This document shows positions 8,609-34,000 of a DNA stretch of 64,000 nt, piece by piece. Numbering within the stretch: the stretch's first letter is position 1; each line of letters opens with the position of its first letter. Position numbers and translations under genes: made by a program. The stretch covers positions 449,055 through 513,054 of the forward strand of contig JAKMXF010000022.1 of assembly GCA_024704765.1 (NCBI GenBank). Reading direction: 5' to 3'. This DNA comes from Oopsacas minuta (taxonomy: Eukaryota; Animalia; Porifera). The notes under the pieces are model-generated. The model was not told the origin of the DNA, made no database searches, and saw only the letters and a list, made by a program, of their open reading frames with translations.

Positions 8609-11600
8609 ATGAGAATTTATAGAATTCTGTTTTTTGTCGTTTTAGCAAATTTTGCTCAAGGTATGTGTGTGTCTCTTAGAATTAAGTAGGATACTTTGCA
8701 TATATTTTGTAGTTCTGAATATTAAACTTCTTAGAATAATTACTGTGCTGACTATTCATTGTTTGCTTTATTGTATTCCTAAATCTAATTATTATTCATA
8801 ATATTGTAGTATTAACATCAGCTGACTCATCCATCCTAAGCTGTGACTTAATTCTAAACGGCTATTGCTATGAACATTTCACTCAAAAGAGTAATTGGAC
8901 AGATGCAAACTCCAGCTGTGTAGATTGGGGAGGTGAATTAGTCAGTCTGTATACACAAACTCTAACTGATTTTCTACCATATCTGATTTCTATCAACACT
9001 GTATGGACTTCTGCAAACAATCTACAAACAAACAACTTCACTCTAGTTTGGAGTAATGGTAGTGAAGTAGATCTGTTACCTGCAGACACTATTATAACAG
9101 AATTTGCTTGTGGTTATGTGTCTGTCTCTGGTGGATTTAATATTTCCATCTGTAACACAACTAGAAGTTACATCTGTACCAAAGAAGGTTAGTTTATCAT
9201 TTTACTCATTTCATTACCTACTATTTCTTTTGATTCTGATCATTTATCCTATTTCTATTCTTGTAGTTCCTTCTGCTGCCCCTAACAACGTTGCAACTAG
9301 TGTAGTTAACTCTACAGCCATTCTCTTAACATGGGATGCTCCAGACCTCTCTGATAGAAATGGAATCCTCCTCTACTACACACTGACTTACTTCGGTGTA
9401 GAATTGGATCAAGTAGTACGAGTAGTTAATTACACCATTGAAGGTTCTGATCACTCCAATCAGACATATGAGTTCTCAGGACTACAGGAATACACTGTGT
9501 ATGAGTTTAGAGTAGCTGCTCATACTAGTTTAGGAGAGGGTGTAACTGCAAGTGTTTCAACTAGGACATATGAATCAGGTGAGTTCACCATTGATGCAGA
9601 AATATTTTAGGGTCAAAGGCGAGCCAGAGTGCGGGACATTGAGTCCTAAAATTGCTTGTGCCCACCAATTCTTTGAATAAAAATGTACTACAGGTCTACA
9701 GCTTTGTGGCACTTATTTTTGCACCTATACCACACCATCGTTCAGTCCGAGCTTCGCCTCTGTTCAAGGTTAACTTACTTGTCTGTAGTTTCATAAACGT
9801 GTATATTTATAGTTCCCACTGCTCAACCATCCAATCTGAATGTACAGATCCTATCGTCTTCAATCTTAATAGCAACTTGGCATGAACCTCCCTTCTCTGA
9901 ACAGAACGGTATACTAACAAAGTACAGAGTAACATGGCGTGGTTTAGAGAGAGATACAGAAGTGAGACTAGAAGACATTCCAGTGAACAGTACCTCCAAT
10001 ACAGCTTACGCATTGACTGATCTAGATGCATACACAAACTATGAAGTGAATGTGAGTAGTTTCACTTCAGTAGGAGCTGGTCCAATCTCTAGTTATACAG
10101 TGACTACTCTACAAGATAGTGAGTTTAATTTTTTGATATATTTGTATTCTAAAATCTAATCTCATTAATTCTTTCTTAGTTCCTTCTTCATCTGTTCGTA
10201 ACCTAACAACATCAACAACAAGCCAGAATGCTACATCTATCTTTGTCAGTTGGATCGTTCCTATACCGAATGATCTGAACGGTATTCTAGTTAACTACTT
10301 CATTAGTTATTTTGGTATAGAAATTGATACAACACTCAGGGTTATATATTTGTCTGATCCGAATGATAATGAATCTATTACTCTAATCGATCTGCAAGAA
10401 TACACAACATATTCTATAAGTGTAGCTGCTTACACAATAGTGGGTAAAGGTCCTGATGCTATCATCACACAAAGAACCAATCAAGATGGTGAGTATTGAA
10501 TAGTCATGATTATATGTATTCTCGTTTCTACCTTGTAATACACGTATAGTAATAGTAGTACTAGTAGTAGATGTCGCATGTACGACTTCTCCTTTCCAGT
10601 GCTAGTGTACTTGGAAATTGGCACATTGTTTGCTTGAGTGTGACTGCCATTAACGTAGAGGTGTTAATTTCCTTTCTTTTTCACCTTTGTGGAAATAGAA
10701 CCATGTTGCACTAACTGCTTGATTCTCCATTTTCTAATTTCTTTTTTGTATTGATTCTATCATTGTATTCATGTTTCCAGCTCCTGTTGATGTTCCTACT
10801 GACTTCAAACTTTATGCTCTTTCTTCCACCATTGTCAACGTTTCATGGGATCCTCCTCCTATTTACTTTCAGAACGGTATAATTACTAACTACACCCTCA
10901 CTTACATGGGTGTTATGAGAGACCGCGAATTGGAGACAATAATTGTTCCTGTTACAAACGGAAGGTACGTAATACCTATACTCACGAGTTTAGAGGAGGA
11001 CACTACTTATGATGTTAATTTGCATGCTAATACTGTTATGGGTGCTGGTCCTGTAGCTAGTAAATCTGTTCGCACACCTGAAGCAAGTAAGTTTTAACTT
11101 TTATTTTAATCCTGCAATTTATTTTGAATTTATTTTGTCTTTTATTCTTTACCAATTCATCAATGTCCGGTTTTATTTGTATTCCATTACAAATGCATTT
11201 AATAGATTATTTCATCATTTTCTCTCAGAAATGATTCGAGATTTCTCTTTTAAAATTCCTCAATTTTAACCATTTACATTCTCTTGTCAAATCTAAAGCT
11301 CGTAACTCTTACCAATCTCTCAGTCAACATTGCAAAAATAATCAAACACAAATTATAATAATATAATTCTAATTTCTCTCTTAGATCCTAAAGGTGCTCC
11401 TAGATATCTTATAGCAACACCGCTCAACAGCACATCTATAATGCTTAACTGGAGTGTACCTAACCCTCAAGATCTTGATGGACAGCTGACTGGTTACCAG
11501 ATTGAATATTTTGGGTTTATAATTGACACTCATAAGAGAACAATTATCATCAATACTAGAAGTCATGATGATCAATCTCAAATATTATCTCCCTTAGAAG

Positions 11601-14600
11601 ATTTTACTGTATATTCTATTTCTGTTAAGTCTAGGACAATTGGTCTGGGTCCCGCATCGACGATCCAAAGAAGAACAAGTGAAACAAGTAAATTTGAGCT
11701 CTCAATTAAATTGTATTCAGTTTAGTTCATTTATTTTAATCATTTATTTTATCATTTTAGCTCCATCTGGCACACCGACTAATTTCACTGCCACTTCATA
11801 TGACTCCAGGGCTATATATATTACCTGGAAGCCTCCTATCTACAGTGAACAGAATGGAGAATTGACATCTTATACACTTACTTATAATGGCGAGGAACGA
11901 GATAAAGAACTGCGAACTGAAATATTTACCAGAAATAGTCGCTCTAACCATTCTCTATACGTGACTAACCTCGAAGAGGATACTACCTTCAATATTTCAA
12001 TTATGGCTAATACTAGCAAGGGTGCAGGTCCAATAGCCTGGATTTCTGTCCTCACGCCAGAAGATGGTAAGTTACTGAAATCTGATTACGTGTTATGTAA
12101 CTTAAGTTCGAAGAAAAAATCATCAATATTTATATATAGTACCTTCATCTTCTGTTCGTAACCTAACAACCTCAACTGAGGGAATGAATGCTACATCGAT
12201 CTTTGTTAGTTGGGAAGTACCAATCTTGAATGATCTGAATGGTATTCTAGTCAATTACTCCATCAACTACTCTGGTATAGAGATTGATACAGTTCCTAGA
12301 GTCATCTACTTGTCCTATCCTAATCTGACCAATCAATCTATTACTCTAATCGACCTGGAGGAATACACCACTTACTCTATTAATGTGTCAGCTTACACGA
12401 AAGTGGGTAAAGGTCCTGATGCTATGATCACACAAATAACCAATCAAGATGGTGAGTATCTATTTCATAATTTCCTGGATATCCTATTGTGTAAATTTAT
12501 ATCTTGTTATTGTGTATATAGTTCCATCTGCTTTTCCTACGGATTTCCTCTTAAAGGCTATTTCACCAACTATCGTTAAAGTATCATGGGATCCTCCTCC
12601 CATAAACGATCAAAACGGTGTAATTACAACTTATACACTCACATACATGGGTTTAGAAAGAGACAATAAATCAAAAACTATTAATATAACTGTCTTGGAT
12701 GGTACATATGTTCTTCCAATACTAATCGGTTTAGAAGAAAATACAAACTATTTCGTTACTCTGAATGCTAATACAAGCGAAGGAGCTGGTCCTATCACTA
12801 ATTTATCTGTTCTAACTCCACAAACCAGTAAGTTGCGAATTATGCAAATTCCATTTCTTCTAGCTAACCAATTCTTCTCATATTTTCTATTTTAGTACCA
12901 AAGGGAGCTCCACGGAACTTGATTCTAACCTCAACTGATACAAGTATCCAGATAAACTGGTCAGTTCCTATAATTGACGATCTGGATGGAAATTTGACAG
13001 GTTATCTAGTCACATACCATGGCTTTAAGATTGATACTCACGAAAGAATGATACAATTCAATACTTCAAGTGATGATAACCAAACACTAACATTGAGTCC
13101 TCTTGAGGAATACACTGACTATTTTATCTCTGTACATGCGATTACTGTGGGGGTGGGTCCTTCTTTGTCTACTACATTCCGCACTTTACAAGCAAGTAAG
13201 TTATCTATCACTGCAAATCCAGAGTATACTATTGTAGCAATTGTAATAATGTAAATATGTCTTATTCAGGGCCTAGTGCTGTTCCCACTGACCTCACCGC
13301 ATCCCCAATATCTGCTCGTGCAATTTTCATAACCTGGTCTCCTCCGCCGTTTATACATCAGAATGGAATAATAACTGAATACACTCTCACCAACCAAGGA
13401 GTAGAGAGAGATATAATGAAAAGAAATATATCAATACCAACTGCTACAAGTCGTTCTACTACTTCTCTCACTGTGACAGATATTGAAGAAGATACTGACT
13501 TTACCATAGCCATTAGAGCTCACACAATTAAAGGACCGGGTCCTATCACTACAGTATCAGTGCGTACTCTTGAGAGTGGTGAGTAATTATAGAGTAAATA
13601 ATTTGAGAGACTGTATTTATATTTTAACTTAACAGAGCCTTCATCTCCTGTACGAGACTTAACAACATCAACAACAAGACAGAATGCTACATCCATCTTT
13701 GTTAATTGGGAAGTACCAATCTTGAATGACCTGAATGGTATTCTAGTCAACTACTCCATCAACTACTCTGGTATAGAGATTGATACAGCACCCAGAGTCA
13801 TCTACTTGTCCTATCCTAATCTCACCAACCAATCTATTACTCTAATCGATCTGCAAGAATACACTACTTACTCCATTAATGTGTCAGCTTACACGAAAGT
13901 GGGTAAAGGTCCTGATGCAATCATCACACAAAGAACCAATCAAGATGGTGAGTTAATCTAATACTTCTTCTTATGCATCATAGGCTGTGTATATCGATGG
14001 CTATTGTATAATCGTTATATTTTCATTTCTAGTTCCATACTTATTTACTTTTATTTCAGCTCCCGATGGAACAGTTCAGTACTTAAACACTACCGAAGCA
14101 AGTCCTTTCGCTACTCTCATCACCTGGGAACCTCCTCCGTTCCCTTTCCAAAATGGACCTATTATAAGTTATGAAATTCTGACAGTATTCTCAGATCCGT
14201 ATACAAACGTGACAGGTTTATCAAGGAACTTTACATGGCTCAATTATACAGACAGAACAGAGATATTGCTTAAGGAACTGAGACCTGGAGTAAACTTCAG
14301 TTCAACTGTTATACCAATTAACCAGGAAGGATCTGGTCCACCAATCTCAACAATATTTAGTATGATCGCAGGTAAGTAGTATTAGTGCAACTCCTATAGG
14401 GAGATATCATATAGATATATAGATATATATAGCATGGAGATAGGGCGACGCACTTATGTTCACGCAATCCGATTGTTATGAGAATTGGTATGTGAGTAGG
14501 ACATCCTTAATACGAAATCATAATAGGTATATTGATATATTGTGAAAATTATTTATTTTCCACAGAAACTATCCCAGAAATCTTAATTCCTGAATCTGAT

Positions 14601-17600
14601 GTATTCATTACTGTACAAGAGGCAGTTGTAGATGAATTCAGTGAATACTATAATTGTACAGCAAGTGGTAATCCTATACCACTCATTCACTGGATCAGGA
14701 ATGATGAAACGAGATTGGATGCTTTTAACATTACGATAAATGGGACTTCATTAGTAAGAGGGAGTAATATATTCAGATGCGTTGCTTCGAGTAGAAATGG
14801 TGAAGACTCTCTTGTCGTTTCAGTCATTCTAGTTTCTGAGGAAGTTGATGTAAGTGCGATCAGTGACGCTCTAGACCTTATCAGCAATCAGACCATTCTT
14901 AATGAACAGGAAACAGATGACCTATCCTCTCTCATCCGGACTAGCGTACAATCTGTTGATTCTAATAGAATGAATAACAGTGTCAACTCTACAGACAGTA
15001 ATTCTACCCAAATTGTCGAAATAGTTTCTGATCTATTCTCCGACCTGATTAGATTAGCAGAGAGTGGAATCTCACGGAACGCCTCAGTCAGACTTTTTGA
15101 TACTGGAGGTGAACTTGTCAGAACTTCTCAAATTAACCAAGGTGTGGCAATGAATGAAGAAATTCCATCTCTATTAGAGGTAGCTAACGCTATAATATGA
15201 GGGAAATAAATTCATATTGATAATCAAATATTATTTTAGAACATATGTCTGAATTTGTTACAAAACGTAACCAACACTTACAGACCTCTAGCTATCTCTG
15301 TTAATGGAATAGAAGATTTGGGAATTAAATTTATCGAAAATCTCAACACAACAGAGCCAAGTGTTATTGATGATCCTGAAAGCAGTATATTCTTCGAAGC
15401 ACAAGAATTGAATGAAACCGTTTATGATAATTCAACTATGACCTTTCCAATGACAAATCGAACTACAAATTCCTCTGAACAAGTTTCTGTACCTGGCAGT
15501 TTACTCCAAGCATTGATGAATTCGAGTAACAACAGTGGTATTGCTCCTAGGATTACAGTAAGTTGGGTTTTTAGTGAGCCCATTGCCTGTAGATCTAGAA
15601 TATTTCTATTGAATATATTTAATTTTCTGATATCTTCTTGTAGATTTCCACAACAGTGATTGGAGAACAACGAGAAAATATTAGCAGAATAGTTGCGTTT
15701 ACTCTTATGGATAGAAGTTCAAAACCTGTAAATCTCTTTGGAAATAGTGTAAGTAATTGAAATGTAACAAATTTGCAACCGAATTTCAGTATTCGGTTAA
15801 TCCACTATTCATGAATACTGATATTCGGTTCGATCGGTTTCAACCTTGAAATGTAATAGAATGTACTATGTATAATGTTTTGTTCACTCATATGCATACA
15901 CTGAGATTATAGAGCCCGCCTCTGGCTGAGAACATTCGATATATATACATATAATATAAGATGTCTTTGTTGTTCTTTGTTGAGTACATATAATAGCAGA
16001 TACTTTTGGCCTTTTAAAAGTAGCATTGGGAATAAAATACCCACACAATTCGTTTATACGGGACTGTTTCCTTTAGATCAATATAACACTTGAAACCACT
16101 CCAGCTCCAAAAGGGTTTGAACATGTGTGTGTTGCACTAAATAGAACTACAAATACCTGGTCAACAGTTGGTGTTAAGATGGTTAAAGAAGATGATGAGA
16201 TGAACACTACAACTTGTGAAACAAACCATTTGACTAGCTTTGCTGTATTGATACAAGTTAAACCAGTTGAAGTGTCCTTTGTTGAGAAAATAATCGCTTC
16301 AGTTTTCTCCTACTTCTTGCTGAGCATATCCTTTTTATTCCTACTGGCTACACTTATACTCTTCTGTATAGGTGGTAGGACATTCCTAAAGGTTGAAATG
16401 AACATATTATACCTTAACTATGGTATTGCCCTCACTTGTGCTAACGGTCTCTTCCTTTTCGGAGTGGAACTTGGAAAATTCCATCCCGTCTCCTGCACCA
16501 TCGTAGCACTATTCCTTCACTACTTTTGGAGTACTGTCTTTTCTTGGAGTCTCTGCAACGCAATACTCATATTTTATAGATTATTCATTGGTGAGTTATA
16601 TCTTTGGGGATGCATATTTGATATTTCTAACATTCCCCATTCCCCACTTATAATTTCAAGGAGTAGAGGTTCGTTTCTATCGAAATGAACCCAAATCGAC
16701 CAAAATCGACCAAAATTCCCCCACTTATAAAGGTTGTACTACTGTACACATCAAATTTCTCATTTTACAATTTGTCCATATTTAGGTATTTTGAGCAACA
16801 GAAAGATTTGGCCATATCTAGTCTTCTTCGGGTGGTTATCTCCCTTACCTCTGGTAATAATATCAGTTAGCATAAAACAATCTGCTTACAGTAACCATCT
16901 AGCTGGCTATTGCTGGCTTTCAAATGAAGATGGACTCATATGGGCCTTCCTGGGTCCAGTATTCCTCGTATTAATCCTGAATGCAATCATACTCACTACA
17001 AGTGCAATTCGTATTGGCACAGCCAGGAAGAATCTTGACAAAGTAAAACAATTGCGTGTTGCACTATTGAGTGCATTCATTCTAACTCCAGTACTGGGCA
17101 TGCCTTGGATCGTATCATTTGCTAAAATAATAACAGTGGGTATAGAAGATGAGCTAGCATTGGCTATACTAGACAAGTTCATAGATTGGGTATTCATTTG
17201 TTTGAATGCTCCAGCAGGAGTGGTATTCTTTATAATCATTTTCAAGAGATTCAGGGAACATCGAAAATTGCTGAGACAAAAGGAAACAGCAGGAAATAGA
17301 ACTGGTATCCCTTCTGATTTTAGCAAATTCAAGAAGAATAATCTATCTGCTCGTGGATCTATAACATCTATCACAGGGCTCACAATTGTCAACCCGAATC
17401 GGGGGCATAACAATCCTTCATGTTCATCAGAAGTATCAAACGCAGTTTATGATCCCTCTACTATGTCATCGAGCAATCAAGATGGGATCGAATTCGAGAC
17501 TATTCATGAAACAAAAGCTCCATATGATTATCCATGCGAGCAAGAGGGTGACGATGTTAAATTAACAGCTGATGATGATGATGAAACAGCAGATACTTCA

Positions 17601-18512
17601 TTCATTTCCAGAGGGATTGTCTTTTTCAAGAATTCATTTAAGTTATCTAACAAAGAGAGTAATGGTGGTGTAGGAGCAGACCAATCGTCAGCACCAAGTC
17701 CTAAGAGGAGCAAATACCATGACCTTTATTTGCAACATATACATCAAATAACTGACAAATCTAATTATGGAATAAACGTAGAATATGGTACAGAAATTGT
17801 AACTGAAGATGGTGTGAAAATTCGTAAAAAATCTATACCCAGTTCGAGCTCAAGCAGGCTTAGTTGTGAACATGCCATTAAGGTTGTAGAGCTGAAACAG
17901 TATTTTGATGATTCGCCAAATTCACCAACTGTACAAGAATTTTTTTCTGAGTCTGATAAAGATTCTATCCCTGTGATACAAGAAAATGATAAACCTGAAG
18001 TAGGACATCCTCTCATGGAACAATACTCCTCTCCACAACGAAAACTAACCCCGCTGCTTGAACCTGATAATGGTGAAATTGAACTATCAAAGGATACTAA
18101 GCACTGGACTAAATTCGAAGAAGATAATGATTTCAATCTTCCGTCTCCTAAAACTATAACCGAGTTTGAACAAACATCCAGTCAACCTCGTGAAAAGAAG
18201 TCAGCTGAAGCCTCAACTTTGGGAAAGGCCAGTTCTCTCGAATACATAGGTACAGAAGATATAAAGCCAAAACAGCGCAGAAGTGCTGATTCACAAGGGG
18301 AACGAATACCAAATACCAGTGTTAGTCATAATATTAAACAATACTCACCCAAAAAAGCTCATAGCACTGGGGCTACTAACGAAAATGATGCTCCAGCTTC
18401 ATTTCCAAACATTGATCCAGAAACTCCAAATAGTTTGAACCCTTTTGATCATTTGGAATCTGAGCAAAACCAAAGTGCAGGAAATACTGTTAATCTGAAA
18501 TTTAACCCATAA
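8609..18512 (+). CDS. Adhesion GPCR paralogue B: signal peptide, CTLD, 12 FN3, Ig, GAIN/GPS, 7TM, ~415-aa tail (~2466 aa)
   Basis: Exons 8609-8660 (MRIYRILFFVVLANFAQ), 8810-9187 (CTLD), FN3 exons 9267-9578, 9813-10118, 10180-10488, 10781-11086, 11385-11687, 11761-12066, 12140-12451, 12522-12827, 12896-13195, 13270-13578, 13636-13947, 14060-14371, then 14566-15179, 15240-15557, 15644-15748, 16077-16590 (GPS CETNHLTSFAVL), 16786-18512. Joined length 7401 nt = 2467 codons, frame consistent. Confidence 0.88.
9207..10495 (+). repeat. Near-identical segment shared with ~27215-28500 (N, Q and S' FN3 exons plus introns)
   Basis: Visual alignment; paired near-identical ORFs 9652/27657, 9807/27812, 9962/27967. 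Confidence 0.9.
9614..9762. mobile_element. hAT-like MITE (~150 bp) in the N-Q intron of gene B
   Basis: Imperfect TIRs CAAAGGCGAGCC / GCTTCGCCTCTG; flanks TTTAGGGT and TTCAAGGT (6/8 match); near-identical copy at 27618. Confidence 0.55.
12140..14032 (+). repeat. Near-identical segment shared with 29179-31071 (five FN3 exons plus introns)
   Basis: Paired ORFs 12919/29958, 13257/30296, 13520/30559, 13722/30761 at a constant offset of 17039. Confidence 0.92.
16065..17260 (+). repeat. 1196-nt near-identical tract shared with 36663-37858 (GPS, 7TM and the intervening intron)
   Basis: Constant offset 20598; identical ORF translations except DKF versus DRF. Confidence 0.95.
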
Positions 18513-19020
18513 TTTGTATTTTAAATATTTTTGTTTCCCCTTTATGTAGATTTTGATAGAACTCTCTGATCTTTGAATTGTAATATGTAATAATATATTA
18601 AAAGTTTGTTTATGTTTCTATTAAATATACATCAAATACCCTACGTATGTAATTTGCCAATTCCAGTAATCGGCAAAGAGCAGCTTGCAATTGATCAACT
18701 GAAATTATTTGCAATCGATCATTAGGGAAGGTTTGCAATTATTCAGAAAATTTGCATAATTCAAACACTCAAATATGGATATAGTCAATTACATTAGATG
18801 ATTAAGAAAATTCTAGTAACTTGAGAAGTGGAAAAGATACATTATGTATATATCCTTCTAGAATTATTACAAAGAGCAATTTTATCAGGCAAACATCATT
18901 GTTCTCTATACAAGTTTGGATAATATAAATTGAGTAATAATCTTATTTCACATAATTATTAAGTGCAGTTACCTACATATTAATTGGTTGGAAACTGTCA
19001 AATTTGTATAAATATTTTAA

Positions 19021-22000
19021 ATGAGAATTTATAGAATTCTTTTATTTGCCCTTCTGGTACATTTTGCTGAAGGTATGTTGTCCTTTAGAATTAATTTTTG
19101 AGTCTTCCTTGCATACTTTTGTTAATCTAGGATTATTGCTTAGAAATACCAAGGTTTTTATCTAATTTGATAATTAGAACGAATATTCGAATATTCTGTG
19201 TATTTATTCCTATTCTTAATATTGTAGTATTAACATCAGCTGACTCATCCATCCTAAGCTGTGACTTAATTCTAAACGGCTATTGCTATGAACATTTCAC
19301 TCAAAAGAGTAATTGGACAGATGCAAACTCCAGCTGTGTAGATTGGGGAGGTGAATTAGTCAGTCTGTATACACAAACTCTAACTGATTTTCTACCATAT
19401 CTGATTTCTATCAACACTGTATGGACTTCTGCAAACAATCTACAAACAAACAACTTCACTCTAGTTTGGAGTAATGGTAGTGAAGTAGATCTGTTACCTG
19501 CAGACACTAATATAACAGAATTTGCTTGTGGTTATGTGTCTGTCTCTGGTGGATTTAATATTTCCATCTGTAACACAACTAGAAGTTACATCTGTACCAA
19601 AGAAGGTTAGTTTATTATTTTATTCATTTAGAATTGTTCATATATATTTTCTATACAAACATATATAGTAATTCTAATTCCATCGTCTGCTCCTGGGAAT
19701 CTAAATGTGACTGCTACGAACTCAACTAGTATACTTATCTCATGGATACCTCCTCAATATCCTTCTTACACTCAGCAGCAACAACAACAACGAGACGAAC
19801 AACTCACAAGTTATATACTAGTAATAATCTCAGGGTTAGAACCAGATAGAAATGAAATGGAATATGAATTACCAACAGATACTCAGTCTTTTAGAGTAAC
19901 AGGTTTAGAAGAAGGAACTCATTACACAATCCAGATAAGTGCAGCTACTAGAGCTGGAATTGGACCTGTCAACTCATCAAGTGTATTTACGCCAGAATCA
20001 GGTAAATTAGTGATTTACTGTACAGGTGTATTCATCAGTGTTGTATACATGTATTATTATCATATTTTAGTACCCACTGGAGAAGTATTAAATTTGACAG
20101 TTATAGAAGTAGATAGCAGAGGAATGTTTGTATCCTGGAGTCCCCCAGCTGTGAGTCTTCAGAACGGTGAAATAAACGGTTACAGGATAGTGATGAGAAG
20201 AGATTCTACAGTAGTGTTGAACATCACTACAACATCTGTATGCTACTCCATATCAGATCTATATCCTCATATAAACTACAGTGTGAGTGTATCTCCTATA
20301 AATTCTGAAGGAGAAGGACCTTCTCTTTCAATCTACCAATACACTGAATCTGAAGGTAAATATTATTTGATTATACAACTAAGTTATTTTAACATTTTGA
20401 TTACTAACCTGTTCACTTAGCTTTTACAAATTAAAATAAGTAAGTCAGCATAATTATGTGTATTACGTAATGAAAAAAACAAAATATAATTACAGGTCCA
20501 AATACTTTACACTTTTCTTAGAAAATGCATTAATACTTTATAAAGTAAACACTGACTATAAAGGTAGTTCCATATGTAATTATATACCCTTCTTCTAGCT
20601 AGCTTGGGCGATTTATGTTTTTTATAGTATTACCTAATAAGGAGTCATTAAGTTATAGATATTAAATATCTGTTAACTCCGAAGGTACTTTACTCTACGT
20701 AGATTCTTCCATGTGACTAGAATACGTAGTTAGCGATTGTAATTTATTTGTAATACAAGTACTGACTTTATATATTATTTCTGAATAGTTCCTTCTTCAT
20801 CTGTTCGTAACCTAACAACATCAACAACAAGCCAGAATGCTACATCCATCTTTGTTAGTTGGATCGTTCCTATACCGAATGATCTGAACGGTATTCTAGT
20901 TAACTACTCCATTAGTTATTTTGGTATAGAAATTGATACAACACTCAGGGTTATATATTTGTCTGATCCTGATGATAATGAATCTATTACTCTAATCGAT
21001 CTGCAAGAATACACAACATATTCTATAAGTGTAGCTGCTTACACAATAGTGGGTAAAGGTCCTGATGCTATCATCACACAAAGAACGAATCAAGATGGTG
21101 AGTGTTGGTTAGATAGATGTTTATTGTTTTGTTGATTGTATTTTAACCATTCTTATTGTTTTCAAGCTCCATCTAGCATTCCTACATCCCTTCAAGCTAC
21201 ACCTCTCTCTCCTACCATCCTCAGCATCACCTGGGAAGATCCTGTCTATATCAATCAAAATGGTATCATCACTACCTACATACTGACTTATGAAGGGATA
21301 GAGAGAGACACACAGCTACGTACACTGACACTCCCTCAGACTAACCTTTCTCTCACCTGTCATAACTTGGATTCTCTTGAGGAGTATACCACTTACAAGA
21401 TTTCGGTCTCAGCCTCTACCACTGTTGGAGCTGGACCTGTTTCAAGAGTTACTGTGAGAACTCTTGAAAATGGTAAGACTTTAGTGATAGTATCCTCTAT
21501 TATTATTTGCGGAAATACTTACCCCCGAGAATACATTTTGGTGCGTTTTACTGAAGAACATCTTATCCGAAATTTCTTCCTAACAATTATTAGAGTTTTG
21601 GAGAGAAATTCCGTATTACCGAAAGTAGGACTTTACTCGATTACATATTACCTGAGTTATACTGTAGTTAATTCCATTTAATTATAACTCAGCTTAGCTT
21701 GACTGTTCAGAGCAGACGCGTCTTAGTCGAGTTGAGTCAACCTACAGATTATTGGCTAATCTCTTGTATTGTGTATCAACTGAAATTGAGCGAAACATAT
21801 TGTATAGATCAGTTTTCGTTAAGACAATTATTCTCCTATTCTAACAATCCCTATTTTGTAGTTCCATCATCTACAGTCCGTAATCTAACTGCTGAACCTA
21901 GTTCCAGTTCCATTACAGTAGGCTGGTATGAACCAATCATGAATGATTTGAATGGCGTACCCACTTACTACACACTGAGATACTCTGGAGTTGAGTTTCA

Positions 22001-25000
22001 GACTGAAGAGAAGACAGTTGTAGTCAACTACACTTCTTCTGGAAATGAGACTGTCACTCTAACTGGTTTAGAGGCTTACACAGTATACGAGATATCTGTT
22101 ACTTTGTCTACGAGTATTGGAGAGGGAGATCCTGCAAATATTGATATTCGAACACTGGAGACAGTTCCCACTGGTACACCCACCGATCTCAACACTAATG
22201 TCCTCTCTGCTAACATCATCAGTGTGACATGGGGTCATCCTATCTCCATTGAACAGAACGGAGTGATCACTGAATACACTCTAACCTACAGAGGCGTGGA
22301 ACGAGACACAACATCTCGTGAAGTAACTCTCTATTCAAATGATACATTCTTTACTAACTACATTCTATCACAACTTGATGAACATACAAACTACAACATT
22401 TCTGTATCAGCCAGTACATCAGTTGGAACAGGTCCAGCTTCTTCTCTTCAAACATTAACAGATCAGAATGGTAAGTCTGATATTAACATTGCTATTTGTT
22501 TGATCAAGTATTTGCATTGCATTGAATCGTTGGACTGCATTGCCATTTCTTGCCTCACTGTTGTATTTCATTCTTATTGTCTAATTTTATTCCTTTAACC
22601 TATAACATTTAAGAATATAACAAATATGTAACCTATCAATATCCTTGTCTTATAATATTTCCTTTTACGTATCCTCATCCCTTCCATTCTTCCTGGATGA
22701 AAGTATTATGTATACTTATATTTATTGCATGGAATATCTTTTCAGTTATTTAAATATTCTAAATTAATGAAATCTCTTCAAACATATTAGGTAAACTGAA
22801 TCAATATTGAAATACTGGTCTGTCCTTAGATATTGTTTATTTATTTTATAATGTTTGGGTTAACTCGAGATACATAATCAGTCGAATCGTCAATATCTAA
22901 CAAAATATTATGATGATAATGTTTGCTAAGCAGCAAGTAAGATTGCATTTTTTTTGGTAGTTGAAAAGTGTCAAAACATATGAACTTTCTTAGCACAGCT
23001 TTTCGAATACATGTTTCATTTCTATATTTTGCTTCTCAACGAGATTCATCACTTCCTTATTTTCTAGTTCCATCATCTACAGTCCGTAGCCTAACTGCTG
23101 TACCTAGTGCCAGTTCCATTACAGTAAGCTGGAATGAACCAATCATGGATGACTTTAATGGTGTACCCACTTACTACACACTGAGATACTCTGGAGTTGA
23201 GTTTCAGACTGAAGAGAAGACAGTTGTAGTCAACTACACTTCTTCTGGAAATGAGATGGTCTCTCTAACTGGTTTAGAGGCTTACACAGTATATGAGATA
23301 TCCGTTACTTTGTCTACGAGTATTGGAGAGGGAGATCCTGCAAATATCGATATTCGAACACTGGAGACAGTTCCCACTGGTACACCCACCGATCTCAACA
23401 CTAATGTCCTCTCTGCTAACATCATCAGTGTGACATGGGGTCATCCTATCTCCATTGAACAGAACGGAGTGATCACTGAATACACTCTAACCTACAGAGG
23501 CGTGGAACGAGACACAGCATCTAGAGAAATAATTCTTCTCTCAAATGAACCATATTTCACTAGTTATGTTATTACTCAATTGGATGAACATACAACTTAT
23601 GATATTGATGTTGCAGCTAGCACAATGATAGGAATTGGTCCAATTGCTAGTATTAGGACTATTACAGATCAAGATGGTGGGTTCAGTCACTACATTTCAT
23701 TATCTACTATTTCTTTCGATTCTGATCATTTATCCTATTTCTATTCTTGTAGTTCCTTCTGCTGCCCCTAACAACGTTGCAACTAGTGTAGTTAACTCTA
23801 CAGCCATTCTCTTAACATGGGATGCTCCAGACCTCTCTGATAGAAATGGAATCCTCCTCTACTACACACTGACTTACTTCGGTGTAGAATTGGATCAAAT
23901 AGTACGAGTAGTTAATTACACCATTGAAGGTTCTAATCACTCCAATCAGACATATGAATTCTCAGGACTACAGGAATACACTGTGTATGAGTTTAGAGTA
24001 GCTGCTCATACTAGTTTAGGAGAGGGTGTAACTGCAAGTGCTTCAGCTAGAACAGATGAATCAGGTGAGTTTATTCTGCAATATTTTAGGATTAACGAAC
24101 CCATTGGCGGATCCACGGGCCCAGGGACGTAACTAATGTTTACACTGCATACTGGTACGCCAAAACTGTATAAAGGTAGGCCCTACAGCCTATAAGTCCG
24201 GATGTTCTTAGTTGATATTCTTCAAATTTCTAGTGGCCTGTGGGCACAATGTGTTCACAGTACCTAAATGAATGTACTCTAGGGCCTGAATACATGGGCC
24301 CCACTGACTCCTGCTTATTATTTTACATTTTTTGCACCCCCCCTTATGAGGATTCCTGGATCTGCTAGTGTTACCCGTCCAATATTTGATATAGTGTGTA
24401 TATATTTCCAGTACCTACTACTCAGCCATCTGAATTGAATGTACAGATCCTATCGTCTTCAATATTGATAGCAACTTGGTATGAACCTCCCTTCTCTGAA
24501 CAGAACGGTATACTAACAAAGTACAGAGTAACATGGCGTGGTTTAGAGAGAGACACAGAAGTGAGACTAGAAGACATTCCAGTGAGCAGTACCTCCAATA
24601 CATCTTACGCATTGACTGATCTAGATGCATACACAAGCTATGAAGTGAATGTGAGTAGTTTCACTTCAGTAGGAGCTGGTCCAATCTCTAGTTATACAGT
24701 GACTACTCTACAAGATAGTGAGTTTAATTTTTTGATATATTTGTATTCTAAAATCTAATCTCATTAATTCTTTCTTAGTTCCTTCTTCATCTGTTCGTAA
24801 CCTAACAACATCAACAACAAGCCAGAATGCTACATCCATCTTTGTTAGTTGGATCATTCCTATACCGAATGATCTGAACGGTATTCTAGTTAACTACTCC
24901 ATTAGTTATTTTGGTATAGAAATTGATACAACACTCAGGGTTATATATTTGTCTGATCCTAATGATAATGAATCTATTACTCTAATCGATCTGCAAGAAT

Positions 25001-28000
25001 ACACAACATATTCTATAAGTGTAGCTGCTTACACAATAGTGGGTAAAGGTCCTGATGCTATCATCACACAAAGAACCAATCAAGATGGTGAGTGTTGGTT
25101 AGATAGATGTTTATTGTTTTGTTGATTGTATTTTAACCATTCTTATTGTTTTCAAGCTCCATCTAGCATTCCTACATCCCTTCAAGCTACACCTCTCTCC
25201 CCTACCATCCTCAGCATCACCTGGGAAGATCCTGTCTATATCAATCAAAATGGTATCATCACTACCTACACACTGACTTATGAAGGGATAGAGAGAGACA
25301 CACAGCTACGTACACTGACACTCCCTCAGACTAACCTTTCTCTCACCTGTCATAACTTGGATTCTCTTGAGGAGTATACCACTTACAAGATTTCGGTCTC
25401 AGCCTCTACCACCGTTGGAGCTGGACCTGTTTCAAGAGTTACTGTGAGAACTCTTGAAAATGGTAAGACTTTAGTGATAATGTTGTTTGATCTATCACTA
25501 CTATCAATAATTCATCTTGGGTTTGTCCAATATAATTCAACTATATTCTCCATATGCTTGGTGAAATCCTGATTCGCATACGTATTGAGTTTAGCTAGCT
25601 TATTCACATTATAAAATAATTAATGAAACTCACAGGAATAATTAATAAGTGTGAAAATCGAATTCAGTTCATGCGATATATCTTTCCACGTTTAATTAAT
25701 TTATAATACTTCCTTGATAAACAGGTTAAATACAAATTTTGTAAAATTGCGAAATTCGAGTTCCAAATACCATGCAATAAATACTTTCCTTGCCAACAGA
25801 CAAACCGACAGTTAGACAAATGCACCAATTGAGATCTATTAATAGTGTAAATATTCAAAAATAGGGAATAACTAATTCAGATACTTTTGCAAGTAGTTAC
25901 ATGTCTGAAAATTATGAAATATTGCAATTATAATAACCAGAGTGTAGTTCAAGAGATATCTGCGAGGGAAGTTGAAGTACAGAGCTATGTAATGTATCTA
26001 CCTAAAAATACTGGCCATATATAGTCTGGTTACAATATTATTCCCCGATATCTCATAAACTCTAAATTTTGATATTTGAAATTGTAGAATAGTTAACCAC
26101 ATATGAAACACTTGTGCAGCATAAGGCTGCGGTAGGTACAACCAGCGCCATGCCACATCTCATATCAATCATTTCTATAATTGAAATAGCATTGAGTTAC
26201 TGCTCATTGGAAAACATTTATGTTTATGGCATGAGTAGTCCAACTACCATATCACCACAACTTTATGTACGTATAGATGGTACGGCCTCACCGTACAAAT
26301 TTTGATAGGATAAGCCACTTGAAACCGTATTCATAATATTAGAGCTAGTTTTCAATATAGTCCATTTAATGACTTGAATGGATTTCACTGAGAGGAAACA
26401 CATTTTCTATGGACAATCCATAAATATCAACAAATATCCATAAATATCCATAAATATCTAGACATATCTAGATGATGTACATTGCGCGACTCCTTAATTA
26501 CACCTGAAATGCTTGAATAATTCATTTGTAGTAAAAATACCGATTCTTCCAAAATATATAAACCTATATCATCCTACATTTCTAGTTCCATCATCTACAG
26601 TCCGTAGCCTAACTGCTGTACCTAGTGCCAGTTCCATTACAGTAAGCTGGAATGAACCAATCATGGATGACTTTAATGGTGTACCCACTTACTACACACT
26701 GAGATACTCTGGAGTTAGGTTTCAGACTGAAGAGAAGATAGTTGTAGTCAACTACACTTCTTCTGGAAATGAGATGGTCTCTCTAACTGGTTTAGAGGCT
26801 TACACAGTATATGAGATATCCGTTACTTTGTCTACAAGTATTGGAGAGGGAGATCCTGCAAATATCGATATTCGAACACTGGAGACAGTTCCCACTGGTA
26901 CACCCACCGATCTCAACACTAATGTCCTCTCTGCTAACATCATCAGTGTGACATGGGGTCATCCTATCTCCATTGAACAGAACGGAGTGATCACTGAATA
27001 CACTCTAACCTACAGAGGCGTGGAACGAGACACAGAATCTAGAGAAATAATTCTTCTCTCAAATGAACCATATTTCACTAGTTATGTTATTACTCAATTG
27101 GATGAACATACAACTTATGATATTGATGTTGCAGCTAGCACAATGATAGGAATTGGTCCAATTGCTAGTATTAGGACTATTACAGATCAAGATGGTGGGT
27201 TCAGTCACTACATTTCATTATCTACTATTTCTTTCGATTCTGATCATTTATCCTATTTCTATTCTTGTAGTTCCTTCTGCTGCCCCTAACAACGTTGCAA
27301 CTAGTGTAGTTAACTCTACAGCCATTCTCTTAACATGGGATGCTCCAGACCTCTCTGATAGAAATGGAATCCTCCTCTACTACACACTGACTTACTTCGG
27401 TGTAGAATTGGATCAAATAGTACGAGTAGTTAATTACACCATTGAAGGTTCTAATCACTCCAATCAGACATATGAGTTCTCAGGACTACAGGAATACACT
27501 GTGTATGAGTTTAGAGTAGCTGCTCATACTAGTTTAGGAGAGGGTGTAACTGCAAGTGTTTCAACTAGGACATATGAATCAGGTGAGTTCACCATTGATG
27601 CAGAAATACTTTAGGGTCAAAGGTGTAGCCAGAGTGCGGGACATTGAGTCCTAAAATTGCTTGTGCCCACCAATTCTTTGAATAAAAATGTACTACAGGT
27701 CTACAGCTTTGTGGCACTTATTTTTGCACCTATGCCACACCATCGTTCAGTCCGAGCTTCGCCTCTGTTTAAGGTTAACTTACTTGTCTGTAGTTTCATA
27801 AACGTGTATATTTATAGTTCCCACTGCTCAACCATCCAATCTGAATGTACAGATCCTATCGTCTTCAATCTTAATAGCAACTTGGTATGAACCTCCCTTC
27901 TCTGAACAGAACGGTATACTAACAAAGTACAGAGTAACATGGCGTGGTTTAGAGAGAGATACAGAAGTGAGACTAGAAGACATTCCAGTGAACAGTACCT

Positions 28001-31000
28001 CCAATACATCTTACGCATTGACTGATCTAGATGCATACACAAGCTATGAAGTGAATGTGAGTAGTTTCACTTCAGTAGGAGCTGGTCCAATCTCCAGTTA
28101 TACAGTGACTACTCTACAAGATAGTGAGTTTAATTTATTGATATATTTGTATTCTAAAATCTAATCTCATTAATTCTTTCTTAGTTCCTTCTTCATCTGT
28201 TCGTAACCTAACAACATCAACAACAAGCCAGAATGCTACATCCATCTTTGTCAGTTGGATCGTTCCTATACAGAATGATCTGAACGGTATTCTAGTTAAC
28301 TACTCAATTAGTTATTTTGGTATAGAAATTGATACAACACTCAGGGTTATATATTTGTCTGATCCTAATGATAATGAATCTATTACTCTAATCGATCTGC
28401 AAGAATACACAACATATTCTATAAGTGTAGCTGCTTACACAATAGTGGGTAAAGGTCCTGATGCTATCATCACACAAAGAACCAATCAGGATGGTGAGTA
28501 TCCTTTGCTTTCTTTTCATGATTTGTTGTGATAACATTGATTTATGAGTGACTTATTGTTTAGTTCCAACTGATATTCCCACTTCATTCTCTGCTAATGC
28601 CATCTCTCCTAACATCATCAACACAACTTGGGAACCTCCAACAGCTTACCACTTGGGTGGAGTTATCACATCCTACACACTGACCTATGCTGGAAGAGAG
28701 AGACACTCTCTCTTGAAGACTATAATCCTTACTGTCCTGAATGGTAGTATTTACATCACTCCTGCTCTGACTGATTTACAAGAAGACACTCATTATTTGA
28801 TATCTGTCCGAGCTAACACAAGTGTAGGAGCAGGACCTTGGACTAGCCTAACTGTACACACCCCTGAAGATGGTTAGTTGGTCTAGGATTTTTCTGTTTT
28901 CCTATTTTGTTAAAAGTTGTGAGCTAGTTGTACCCAGATGATGAACTACGTTTATCAATTTTTCATTTGCTAAATTCACATTCTTCAAATGTTCTTTTCC
29001 TATTATCCGTCAAGGACGATATTGAGTTGACACTAGTTAGGGCAGTCGGTAGCGGATGGTCCACAACACTATTTAATGTGCCCGCCCCCATTGGCTCATT
29101 TTATCCTCGATTTGGTACCCTAATGTATTTACAAGCTAGCTTAAAAGATAATTTCTTTATATATTTGCTGTTATTTAGTACCTTCTTCTTCTGTTCGTAA
29201 CCTAACAACATCAACAGAAGATCAGAATGCTACATCGATCTTTGTCAGTTGGGAAGTACCAATCTTGAATGACCTGAACGGTATTCTAGTCAATTACTCC
29301 ATCAACTACTCTGGTATAGAGATTGATACAGTACCCAGAGTCATCTACTTGTCTTATCCTAATCTGACTAACCAATCTATTACTCTAATCGATCTGGAGG
29401 AATACACCACTTATTCCATCAATGTGTCAGCTTACACAATAGTGGGTAAAGGTCCCGATGCTATCATCACACAGAGAACCAATCAAGATGGTGAGTATCT
29501 ATTTCATAATTTGCCAGATCGCCTATTGTGTAAATTTATATCTTGTTATTGTGTATATAGTTCCATCTGCTTTTCCTACGAATTTCCTCTTAAAGGCTAT
29601 TTCACCAACTATCGTTAAAGTATCATGGGATCCTCCTCCCATAAACGATCAAAACGGTGTAATTACAACTTATACACTCACATACATGGGTTTAGAAAGA
29701 GACCAAGAATTAGAAACAATGATTATAACTGTCTTGAATGGTACATATGTTCTTCCAATACTAATCGGTTTAGAAGAAAATACAAACTATTTCGTTACTC
29801 TGAATGCTAATACAAGCGAAGGAGCTGGTCCTATCACTAATTTATCTGTTCTAACTCTACAAAACAGTAAGTTGCGAATTATGCAAATTCCATTTCTTCT
29901 AGCTAACCAATTCTTCTCATATTTTCTATTTTAGTACCAAAGGGAGCTCCACGGAACTTGATTCTAACCTCAACTGATACAAGTATCCAGATAAACTGGT
30001 CAGTTCCTATAATTGACGATCTAGATGGAAATTTGACAGGTTATCTAGTCACATACCATGGCTTTGAGATTGATACTCACGAAAGAATGATACAATTCAA
30101 TACTTCAAGTGATGATAACCAAACACTAACATTGAGTCCTCTTGAGGAATACACTGACTATTTTATCTCTGTACATGCGATTACTGTGGGGGTGGGTCCT
30201 TCTTTGTCTACTACATTCCGCACTTTACAAGCAAGTAAGTTATCTATCACTGCAAATCCAGAGTATACTATTGTAGCAATTGTAATAATGTAAATATGTC
30301 TTATTCAGGGCCTAGTGCTGTTCCCACTGACCTCACCGCATCCCCAATATCTGCTCGTGCAATTTACATAACCTGGTCTCCTCCGCCGTTTATACATCAG
30401 AATGGAATAATAACTGAATACACTCTCACCTACCAAGGAGTAGAGAGAGATATAATGAAAAGAAATATATCAATACCAACTGCTACAAGTCGTTCTACTA
30501 CTTCTCTCACTGTGACAGATATTGAAGAAGATACTGACTTTACCATAGCCATTAGAGCTCACACAATTAAAGGACCGGGTCCTATCACTACAGTATCAGT
30601 GCGTACTCTTGAGAGTGGTGAGTAATTATAGAGTAAATAATTTGAGAGACTGTATTTATATTTTAACTTAACAGAGCCTTCATCTCCTGTACGAGACTTA
30701 ACAACATCAACAACAAGACAGAATGCTACATCCATCTTTGTTAATTGGGAAGTACCAATCTTGAATGACCTGAATGGTATTCTAGTCAACTACTCCATCA
30801 ACTACTCTGGTATAGAGATTGATACAGCACCCAGAGTCATCTACTTGTCCTATCCTAATCTCACCAACCAATCTATTACTCTAATCGATCTGCAAGAATA
30901 CACTACTTACTCCATTAATGTGTCAGCTTACACGAAAGTGGGTAAAGGTCCTGATGCAATCATCACACAAAGAACCAATCAAGATGGTGAGTTAATCTAA

Positions 31001-34000
31001 TACTTCTTCTTATGCATCATAGGCTGTGTATATCGATGGCTATTGTATAATCGTTATATTTTCATTTCTAGTACCATCTGGACCTCCACTCAATCTTACC
31101 GCCTTTCCCATCTCTCCAACTGATATTCTTGCTGAGTGGAAGGTACCTGATACTTATGAACAAAACGGTATAATTGTCCTGTTTACAATCATCTTCTCAA
31201 GTCTAAATTCTGACGCACATGACGACATCAAGCGGACCCTTCCTGTTTCAGACAACAGCACAAAATTCTGTTTTCTGTTATCAGGATTAGAAGAAGGTAC
31301 TACTTATAGTATTCGTGTATCAGCTAGCACATCAGTTGGTGAGGGTCCATTCAGCAATACTCAAGCAAGTACCTTCAATACAGGTATGTTTGTTAGTACG
31401 TGTATTGTTATTTCCAGAATTAGTCACTCTTTATTATTCGATAATTTAACAGAGTGTATCTTATGATTTGTATGTATTTAGGTCCGACAAGAGCACCACG
31501 TAATTTCTTTGCATACGAAATTACAGCTATTTCAATTTCTGTTTCTTGGGATGCACCAGAAGATGAAGACATTAATGGAATATTAGATAGATATGAACTA
31601 ACATATTCTGGGAAAGATCTCGATACACATCTTCATGTTGAGTATTTCGAAGACAATCTCTATCATTTGCAAACAGCTGAATTAACTAATTTACAGGAAA
31701 ATACCATCTACACTATACAAGTATATTTGTTTTCTTCCGGTATCAGGAGTCCACCGGCCACGATGATTGTTAACACTCTACAATCAGGTAGATAACCTAT
31801 ATTAGTATATTTCTCATTGTTCTGTTATTTATTTACTTTTATTTCAGCTCCCAATGAAACAGTTCAGTACTTAAACACTACCGAAGCAAGTCCTTTCGCT
31901 ACTCTCATCACCTGGGAACCTCCTCCGTTCCCTTTCCAAAATGGACCTATTATAAGTTATGAAATTCTGACAGTATTCTCAGATCCGTATACAAACGTGA
32001 CAGGTTTATCAAGGAACTTTACATGGCTCAATTATACAGACAGCACAGAGATATTGCTTAAGGAACTGAGACCTGGAGTAAACTTCAGTTCAACTGTTAT
32101 ACCAATTAACCAGGAAGGATCTGGTCCACCAATCTCAACAATATTTAGTATGATCGCAGGTAAGTAGTATTAGTGCAACTCCTATAGGGAGATGTCATAT
32201 AGATATATAGATATATATAGCATGGAGATAGGGCGACGCACTTATGTTCACGTAATCCGATTGTTATGAGAATTGGTATGTGGTAGGACATCCTTAATAC
32301 GAAATCATAATAGGTATATTGATATATTGTGAAAATTATTTATTTTCCACAGAAACTATCCCAGAAATCTTAATTCCTGAATCTGATGTATTCATTACTG
32401 TACAAGAGGCAGTTGTAGATGAATTCAGTAGATACTATGAGTGTGTAGCAAGTGGTAATCCTATACCACTCATTCACTGGATCAGGAATGATGAAACGAG
32501 ATTGGATGCTTTTAACATTACGATAAATGGGACTTCATTAGTAAGAGGGAGTAATATATTCAGATGCGTTGCTTCGAGTAGAAATGGTGAAGACTCTCTT
32601 GTCGTTTCAGTCATTCTAGTTTCTGAGGAAATTGATGTAAGCGCGATCAGTGATACTCAAGAGCTAGTTAGCAATCAGACTAGCCTTAACGAAGAGGAAA
32701 CAGATGACCTCTCCTCTCTCATCCGGACTAGCGTACAATCTGTTGATTCTAATAGAATGAATAACAGTGCCAACTCTACAAACAGTAATTCTACTGCTAA
32801 TTCTACCGAAATTGTAGATGCGGTTTCTGGTCTATACTCTGACGTGATTAGATTAACAGAGATGGGAATCTCGCGGAACACATCAGTTAACCTGTTCAGT
32901 ACTGGAGGTGAGCTTGTCAGAGCTTCTCAAAATGACCAAGGTATAGCAGAAAATCAAGAAATCCCATCTTTATCAGGGGTGAGTATTCCTTTTGAGGGAA
33001 ATAAATTCCTTTTGATTAACAAATAATATTCTAGAATATATGCTTGTTTCCATTACAAAATGTAACCAACACTTACAGAGCTCTAGCTATCTCTGTTAAT
33101 GGAATAGAAGATTTGGGAATTAAATTTATCGAAAATCTCAACACAACAGAGCCAAGTGTTATTGATGATCCTGAAAGCAGTATATTCTTCGAAGCACAAG
33201 AATTGAATGAAACCGTTTATGATAATTCAACTATGACCTTTCCAATGACAAATCGAACTACAAATTCCTCTGAACAAGTTTCTGTACCTGGCAGTTTACT
33301 CCAAGCATTGATGAATTCGAGTAACAACAGTGGTATTGCTCCTAGGATTACAGTAAGTTAAGAGTTGAATTTATCTGTTCAAGGAAATTATGACAATGAG
33401 AAATTGGTCTGGTGTAATTTGTCGGTGTAAGCACTGTAAGGTGACCTAAGGTATTACATTTATTATGGAGAGAAGGGATTATCCATGTGTTCATCTGAGA
33501 CTATTTCCGCCTCGGACCGTTGCATTTATGTCAAGAATTGCAGTAAATTTATCGATGTCGTATGATGGGCTAATTAGGTAGGATTTCCATATACAATAAT
33601 TCAGTTTATACGTATATGATTACTTTTAGATTTCTACAACTTTTATTGGAGAAAAACAAGAAAATATTAGCAGGATACTTGTGTTCAGTATTCAAGAAAG
33701 AAACTCAACAAAACTGATAGAGTTCTTTGGAAATAGTGTAAGTTATTTGGGAAATTACTCAATTTAATACTAACTGTATAATCACGAAGATAATAATATT
33801 CTCAGTAGAAATCTAAATATTAACAGAATTTATTACAGGTAGACTTGAGATTCGCTCAGTTCTACATTATCCCCTCCTACTCTAGCGTCATTAGATCTTA
33901 TAGATTCCATAGTATGCTCATCACTGCGTTTGAGTCCGTATGAATTTGAGTTGTTTTCATTGTTATTGTAGAACTTTGTTTCATCTTTCTGCATTTTTGA

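Follow-up and report, generated by a model that had tools for sequence, protein, structure and literature searches.

Alternation of two FN3 domain classes in a tandem family of adhesion GPCR genes of the glass sponge Oopsacas minuta

Three tandem receptor genes in the window

The window analysed here is a 64,000-nucleotide stretch of the genome of the glass sponge Oopsacas minuta (contig JAKMXF010000022.1, hereafter contig C22, positions 449055-513054) with a G+C content of ca. 36%. Three paralogous genes, designated A, B and C, occur in tandem on its plus strand and share the same layout, in which a C-type lectin domain is followed by an array of fibronectin type III (FN3) domains, an Ig-like domain, a GPS and a seven-transmembrane region (7TM). 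Judged by their sequence, these genes are adhesion G protein-coupled receptors (GPCRs, class B2). The subject of this report is their FN3 array, in which domains of two classes, a and b, alternate. Domain labels give the gene and the order of the FN3 domain within it (for instance C11).

Assignment of the genes to this receptor class relies on gene C, in which a GPS (Pfam GPS, 35.7 bits for a cut-off of 22.5) directly precedes a secretin-type 7TM (Pfam 7tm_2, 28.7 and 62.4 bits on the corresponding exons, cut-off 20.6); GPS and 7TM of genes A and B were assigned by homology to these exons. The gene C lectin exon matches Pfam Lectin_C (PF00059) with 33.7 bits (cut-off 22.6, E 6.7e-08), and examples of FN3 domains from both classes, including head and membrane-proximal domains, match Pfam fn3 (PF00041) with 29-87 bits (cut-off 25). 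In all three genes the exon after the array has matches to Ig_3, Ig_2 and I-set of 15-20 bits (E ca. 0.001) that are below the Pfam cut-offs of 24-30, and it is referred to here as Ig-like. In the alignment of the 43 FN3 domains of the window, neither the conserved cysteines nor the WSXWS motif of the cytokine-receptor homology module were found.

The lectin exon with which gene A begins is ca. 28.9 kb upstream of the window, and the gene is represented in the window by its last five FN3 exons, A1-A5, which occur in the order a,b,a,b,a at 1..2462 (domains at 1-297, 940-1242, 1315-1614, 1780-2082 and 2150-2449) and were delimited by a hidden Markov model (HMM) scan and phase 1-1 splice sites. 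They are followed at 2553..7751 by the Ig-like exon, the GPS/7TM exons and a long cytoplasmic tail, as delimited by open reading frames (ORFs). In gene B, a C-type lectin exon (8793..9187) that is 99% identical to that of gene C precedes an array of 12 FN3 domains in the order (b,a)x6 at 9267..14359 (domain starts at 9269, 9815, 10182, 10783, 11387, 11763, 12142, 12524, 12898, 13272, 13638 and 14062), defined by HMM scan, splice sites and the leave-one-subfamily-out HMMs described below; the Ig-like exon, GPS and 7TM exons and tail were placed at 14553..18512 by ORFs and homology. Gene C has its lectin exon at 19167..19605, two head domains recognised by HMM scans at 19669..20355 (C1, with a poly-Q insert, and C2, of class a), and a core array of 24 domains, C3-C26, in the order (b,a)x12 at 20789..32147 (HMM scans and splice sites), in which three b-a pairs are each fused in a single exon (21862-22470, 23068-23676 and 26586-27194). 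Its region from the Ig-like exon to the 7TM spans 32340..39386, with the GPS exon at 36723-37286 and the 7TM/tail exon at 37332-39386.

Two classes of FN3 domains alternate along the arrays

Motif scan, frame-by-frame reading and HMM scan agree on 43 FN3 domains on the plus strand of the window (5 in gene A, 12 in gene B and 26 in gene C), and no hidden or decayed FN3 exon was found in the introns of the window when this strand was scanned. A preliminary description of this DNA had proposed that b and a domains alternate across all of them, which was borne out by motifs, phylogeny and profile scores, with C1 giving conflicting results. The motif D[LFRI][ND]G is present in 19 of the 21 domains at b positions and in none of the 22 at a positions, and the motif QNG in 20 of the 22 at a positions and in none of the 21 at b positions. 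The longer motifs of the preliminary description hold in their cores within the window; their spacing is loose, and DRNG replaces QNG in some class-a domains of relatives, so that class is a property of the whole profile and not of a motif.

As had been anticipated, the maximum-likelihood (ML) tree of the 43 domains splits by position, the a and b domains being the two sides of one branch (support 71/79, with the split in 70% of the bootstrap trees), and one starred clade comprises 17 of the 21 b domains. Class HMMs built by leaving out one subfamily at a time called 42 of the 43 domains by their positional class, the exception being C1, which scores 53.2 with the a and 43.1 with the b profile and yet falls on the b side of the ML tree. 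The circularity of these HMMs was checked by the subfamily leave-out itself, by loci from other assemblies and by five control genes (see below). Across 9 b and 11 a subfamilies, ca. 10 of the 99 alignment columns are class-specific, and they are located where the general topology of the FN3 fold puts the A strand, the BC loop and the EF loop.

At the ends of the arrays, the proposal that the lectin is followed by a b-type domain holds for gene B; in gene C the first domain is C1, which the tree puts with b and the HMMs do not, and in gene A and most relatives a divergent head domain comes first. The membrane-proximal domain before the Ig-like exon is of class a, as had been described, and the FN3 counts of the two complete genes, 12 in B and 26 in C, are indeed even.

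Gene A upstream of the window, other assemblies and control genes

For the rest of gene A, 40 kb upstream of the window were fetched. After the lectin, this gene has four divergent head domains and then a core array that alternates b,a in every contiguous stretch. Of the head domains, those labelled X1 and X2 could be fitted to neither class, and X3 resembles b, though only weakly.

A word search with the fused b-a exon retrieved fragments from five other ENA assemblies, where they are carried by long contigs, and six loci of ca. 20 kb were fetched from these assemblies. Class HMMs trained on the window alone called strict alternation at all six loci, one of which has an apparently complete array of 36 domains that runs from a lectin exon to an a domain of the membrane-proximal type, the locus ending before any Ig-like exon. 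Overall, 245 of 245 adjacencies among 259 core domains from six assemblies alternate, a junction of two class-a exons at a single N in gene A (see next section) not being counted as a break. In both classes there are subfamilies represented in several assemblies, which dates the two classes and most of the subfamilies to before the separation of these lineages. Neighbouring domains have a median identity of 33% and, in the loci of relatives, at most 40.8%, while domains two apart have a median identity of 41-47% and reach up to 100%.

Five other multi-FN3 ORFs of the same genome served as controls; a period of two was apparent neither from their class calls nor from their identity by distance, indicating that the method does not manufacture alternation. 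These ORFs are intron-free, encode 1,600-3,300 aa with 12-23 FN3 domains each, and are located on contig C22 at 545885-552208 (minus strand, 33-39 kb beyond the window) and 535448-538321, and on contigs C188, C255 and C333. A search of a protein atlas returned generic FN3 clusters only. The alternation is thus real, old and specific to this receptor family, and it is strict as far as the data are reliable; a two-domain period is a fair description of the array. With 259 domains, six assemblies and no verified exception, this is a large and clean period-two domain array.

An apparent break in gene A

In gene A, 10.06 to 9.39 kb upstream of the window, the assembly has two class-a exons separated by 68 nt, the splice sites of each being intact. 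Taken at face value, this a-a junction would be a real and tolerated loss of a single domain, in which case odd events do occur and alternation is not strict. The 68-nt stretch, however, has a single N (contig C22, position 439324, 9.73 kb upstream of the window) that is situated exactly at a switch of intron type: it is preceded by the initial 24 nt of an a-to-b intron, which recur unchanged 4 kb further upstream, and followed by the final 43 nt of the b-to-a intron normally found. Because the N coincides with the switch between two intron types, the junction looks like a scaffold join. Alignment to this stretch of the contigs from four public runs of a single sample gave none, among those listed, that bridged the N; one DNA contig, which may derive from the upstream copy, extends beyond it with the sequence of the upstream intron. 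A genuine single-domain loss at this place appears highly improbable.

Duplicated blocks and a crossover within exon C11

Self-comparison of the window revealed several blocks of FN3 exons that have been duplicated together with their introns, identities being calculated with introns included. Between genes B and C, these are B1-B3 and C15-C17 (98.4% identity) and B7-B11 and C19-C23 (97.4%), and within gene C they are C7-C9 and C13-C15 (99%), C10-C11 and C16-C17 (97%), and C3-C4 and C11-C12 (99.1%). Divergence in the duplicated blocks is 1.4% in introns and 3.5% at synonymous sites of exons, and pN/pS among recent copies is ca. 0.35, which, together with the class-specific columns, is indicative of purifying selection on the domains themselves.

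Exon C11 (24779..25087; class b, subfamily b1) was identified as recombinant by sliding identity and informative sites. Its upstream flank is 98-100% identical to the flank of C17 and only 38-60% to that of C3, whereas its downstream flank and the next exon are 98-100% identical to the C3 side and 40-68% to C17. The switch point is inside the b1 exon, in which C3, C11 and C17 are 94-100% identical; from this pattern, C11 is the product of a homologous crossover inside a like exon. Blocks 97-99% identical with their introns and a junction inside a like unit, here one junction, are what is found in arrays that evolve by homologous unequal recombination. The neighbours being only 33% identical (median) and domains two apart up to 98-100%, homologous misalignment pairs like with like only and the register is kept; the step from identity to recombination behaviour follows from what is generally known of homologous recombination.

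These data lead to the explanation that we regard as the probable one, namely that the FN3 stalks of the three adhesion GPCRs would be built from an old two-domain module, b then a, and that recombination or conversion between like exons would keep the register in the absence of selection on it. Growth, shrinkage and homogenisation of the arrays would be due mainly to unequal homologous recombination or gene conversion, acting between like exons together with the introns that they share, and would proceed in blocks of 2, 4 or 6 domains, class a and b exons (ca. 33% amino-acid identity) being presumably too different to recombine with each other. Homologous events would then shift the length by whole periods only, making the alternation self-perpetuating and giving paralogues whose FN3 stalks have 12, 26, 36 and more than 50 domains below one lectin tip. 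Occasional deletions at microhomologies would also take place, the few seen having kept parity in a manner compatible with chance. Recombination alone would presumably be sufficient. Domain class stays fixed in these arrays while copy number and order change fast, and a higher-order protein pattern could persist by the mechanics of recombination alone, which calls for caution in reading selection from a preserved register.

Several observations concern the history of gene B. Within the block of 97-99% identity shared with gene C, B7 and C19 (12142-12444 and 29181-29483) differ at ca. 19.5 synonymous and 6.5 non-synonymous positions, a pattern suggesting a mosaic of old and recently converted sequence and strong purifying selection on this b1 exon. 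Domains B4-B6 (10496-12133) are long-diverged relatives of B8-B10 and C20-C22, and are situated between blocks 97-98% identical to gene C, while the cytoplasmic tails of B and C are ca. 80% identical (17810-18303 and 38636-39123). Gene B may be an old paralogue that has been partly overwritten by conversion from gene C.

Non-homologous deletions

Three-way alignments documented two deletions of another kind, both in gene B. The intron joining the lectin exon of gene B to an internal b exon (9188..9266) is chimeric, its first part corresponding to the intron between lectin and C1 in gene C and the rest to the intron between C14 and C15, the two being joined at a short shared motif. The second deletion, which as previously described removed exactly two exons, affects the homologues of C24 and C25, both retained by gene A as A3 and A4. 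It extends from just inside the C24 exon to ca. 25 nt before the C26 acceptor, so that the junction (14016..14060) has the former C24 acceptor, still present, ahead of the final ca. 25 nt of the C25-to-C26 intron. A third event of this kind can be inferred in gene C, which is devoid of two of the four head domains present in gene A and most relatives.

The retained acceptor of the lost exon (14030-14060) is located 27 nt upstream of the B12 acceptor, in frame and with no intervening stop. The use of these two alternative B12 acceptors could give products differing by nine residues.

All three non-homologous deletions, the two documented and the one inferred, are even, an outcome with a chance probability of ca. 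1 in 8. They are compatible with chance parity and too few to test selection. The proposal of the preliminary description that register-breaking events are selected against is thus not upheld: the C11 event is homologous and cannot change the register, and what remains are these three even deletions. Active maintenance of parity, which we hold to be clearly short of an even chance, would mean that arrays with two like FN3 domains side by side are purged, on account either of the misfolding of near-identical neighbours or of a requirement for both kinds of junction in a stiff rod. Several points weigh on that side and against the sufficiency of recombination. Both documented deletions kept parity, as did the inferred loss of head domains in gene C, and should non-homologous events be common, the finding of zero odd junctions in 245 would need selection. 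Recombinant junctions dissected at the base level number one, that of C11. Finally, the ca. 10 class-specific columns and the pN/pS of ca. 0.35 mean that the domains are constrained, and the two classes may not be interchangeable.

Exon structure and partners of the b-a pair

A particular form of selection on parity would operate if the b-a pair were a co-adapted structural unit whose domains meet at a specific interface, in the manner of super-repeat proteins, and alleles breaking the register were removed. Several features of the arrays are in line with this. One b-a pair, b2-a1, is found as a single fused exon in every assembly sampled; core arrays begin with b and end with a, the complete ones having 12, 26 and 36 domains; the class-specific columns fall at the A strand, BC loop and EF loop; and every non-homologous deletion seen is even. 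Furthermore, AlphaFold2 run on the fused b-a pair with 23 aligned sequences gave a confident and extended model (mean pLDDT 91, pTM 0.71) that resembles the tandem FN3 pairs of LAR, integrin beta4 and neogenin (TM 0.77-0.81).

Other observations do not point to a fixed pair. All FN3 exons are of phase 1-1, and the reading frame consequently does not enforce pairs. Partners are fixed at the subfamily level in two b-a combinations only, b2 with a1 and b3 with a3, whereas b1 is followed by six different a subfamilies and the a-to-b junctions are mixed too; such promiscuity implies that what is kept is the alternation of classes and not a fixed co-adapted pair. The gene B deletion took an a-b unit, not a b-a unit, and in doing so brought b1 and a10 together as a new pair. 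Copies of the fused pair that are split by introns exist as well. As for the model, it fits a rod-like stalk and is neutral as to a special interface, its pTM of 0.71 being no demonstration of a fixed one, and only the b-a junction was modelled, the a-b junction being interrupted by an intron in every copy. Since homologous recombination explains the kept register without selection, we consider the co-adapted pair an unlikely explanation. The titin-like FN3 pair put forward as the structural unit in the preliminary description thus stands as a two-domain period that is real and old (245 of 245 adjacencies, with a fused b-a exon) and falls as a fixed co-adapted pair, the partners being promiscuous.

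Although most copies of b2-a1 are fused, some are split by an intron of 71-820 nt, and both forms occur within a single array. Split copies were located ca. 6.2-5.5 kb upstream of the window (locus L007) and in other loci at L015:14023-14678 and L016:11583-12987. An apparent asymmetry in intron length, with short b-to-a and long a-to-b introns, was dropped as both types have members of 60-90 nt as well as long ones.

One of the four public runs is RNA-like: it has no depth over a long intron, and its GT..AG joints coincide to the base with two introns predicted for gene A (70 and 304 nt). Loose ends in this run make two further connections, one from the end of a b1 exon to the start of an a4 exon and one from the end of B6 to a b1 exon start (B6-B7). 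All its joints and loose ends correspond to consecutive a/b junctions, in contigs that by nature cannot show rare isoforms.

Divergence between neighbouring domains

A second form of selection would act on the neighbours themselves: the intervention of a domain of the other class lowers the identity between neighbours and might suppress long-lived inter-domain misfolding, so that near-identical neighbours would be selected against. For titin Ig tandems, divergence between adjacent homologous domains has been proposed to limit stable misfolds (PMC4660218). The sponge arrays conform to such a rule, as neighbours have a median identity of 33% and never exceed 40.8% in the relatives' loci while same-class domains two apart may be 98-100% identical, and as no single-exon tandem duplication is seen in the 245 adjacencies in spite of phase 1-1 exons. 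The same numbers, however, also follow from history, an a/b array that recombines homologously never putting like beside like. In addition, bacterial stalk (periscope) proteins reportedly tolerate highly similar adjacent repeats, and for the sponge domains the proposal is one by analogy. We therefore find this explanation doubtful, and somewhat more so than that of a co-adapted pair; the recombination of like exons remains the reading that we favour. If parity were nevertheless selected, the rule that tandem domains must differ from their neighbours to fold safely would have a natural test case in this sponge receptor family, which evolves fast.

Relation to known repeat arrays and receptors

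The A-band of titin is organised in super-repeats with position-specific patterns of Ig and FN3 domains. The sponge arrays share with it a fixed repeating order of domain types in which equivalent positions are more alike than neighbours; indeed, this is the case over the whole array (41-47% versus 33%), and the ML tree splits by class. They differ in having a period of two, a single fold, a location in a receptor ectodomain, a repeat number that is highly variable between paralogues and no known periodic partner. At the DNA level, they resemble higher-order tandem repeats shaped by unequal crossing-over and gene conversion, in which multi-unit blocks are far more alike than neighbours, and the introns are co-duplicated, a crossover falls in a like unit and copies cluster by lineage; the difference is that the sponge units are protein-coding exons under purifying selection (pN/pS ca. 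0.35).

Two strictly alternating module classes are also known from the staphylococcal surface proteins SasG and Aap, in which G5 and E modules alternate, modules of the same class are near-identical and the product is an elongated stalk. These proteins are bacterial and of other folds, and their E modules fold only in context. Periscope proteins (PMC8201768) likewise have a binding domain on a stalk whose length is set by repeat number, as would be the lectin on 12, 26, 36 or more than 50 FN3 domains here; they are bacterial and consist of one class of similar neighbouring repeats, and stalk length in the sponge may likewise matter for function.

In the survey of Amphimedon GPCRs, adhesion receptors have a core of GPS and 7tm_2 and long N-termini for which fn3 and Ig are listed among the domains (PMC4302439), as in genes A, B and C, where the Ig matches are below cut-off; the lectin-tipped FN3 array and its two alternating classes are not part of that description. 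The Oopsacas minuta genome paper has no mention of fibronectin, FN3 or lectin (PMC10280926), and the alternation was not found described in the literature searched. The present data thus document a lectin-tipped, length-variable family of adhesion GPCRs in glass sponges.

Other features of the receptor loci

The poly-Q run of C1 is located in the BC-loop region of this domain (19743-19830), and a similar Q-rich insert is found in the homologous domain of another assembly (L013:4429-4737 and L014:711-1019).

Two unplaced contigs, C291 (1028 bp) and C272 (1198 bp), have one a and one b exon of the receptor family each, and probably belong in the three assembly gaps of gene A.

Finally, an ORF of 327 aa lies antisense to gene A (minus strand, L005:3056-4039, ca. 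26.9-26.0 kb upstream of the window) in the intron between its head domains and the first b exon. ORFs found at the equivalent site in two other assemblies (L009:3358-4344 and L016:5945-6928) have matches to Pfam RNase_HII. From the sequences compared, this nesting appears to be conserved, and gene C is devoid of such an insert.

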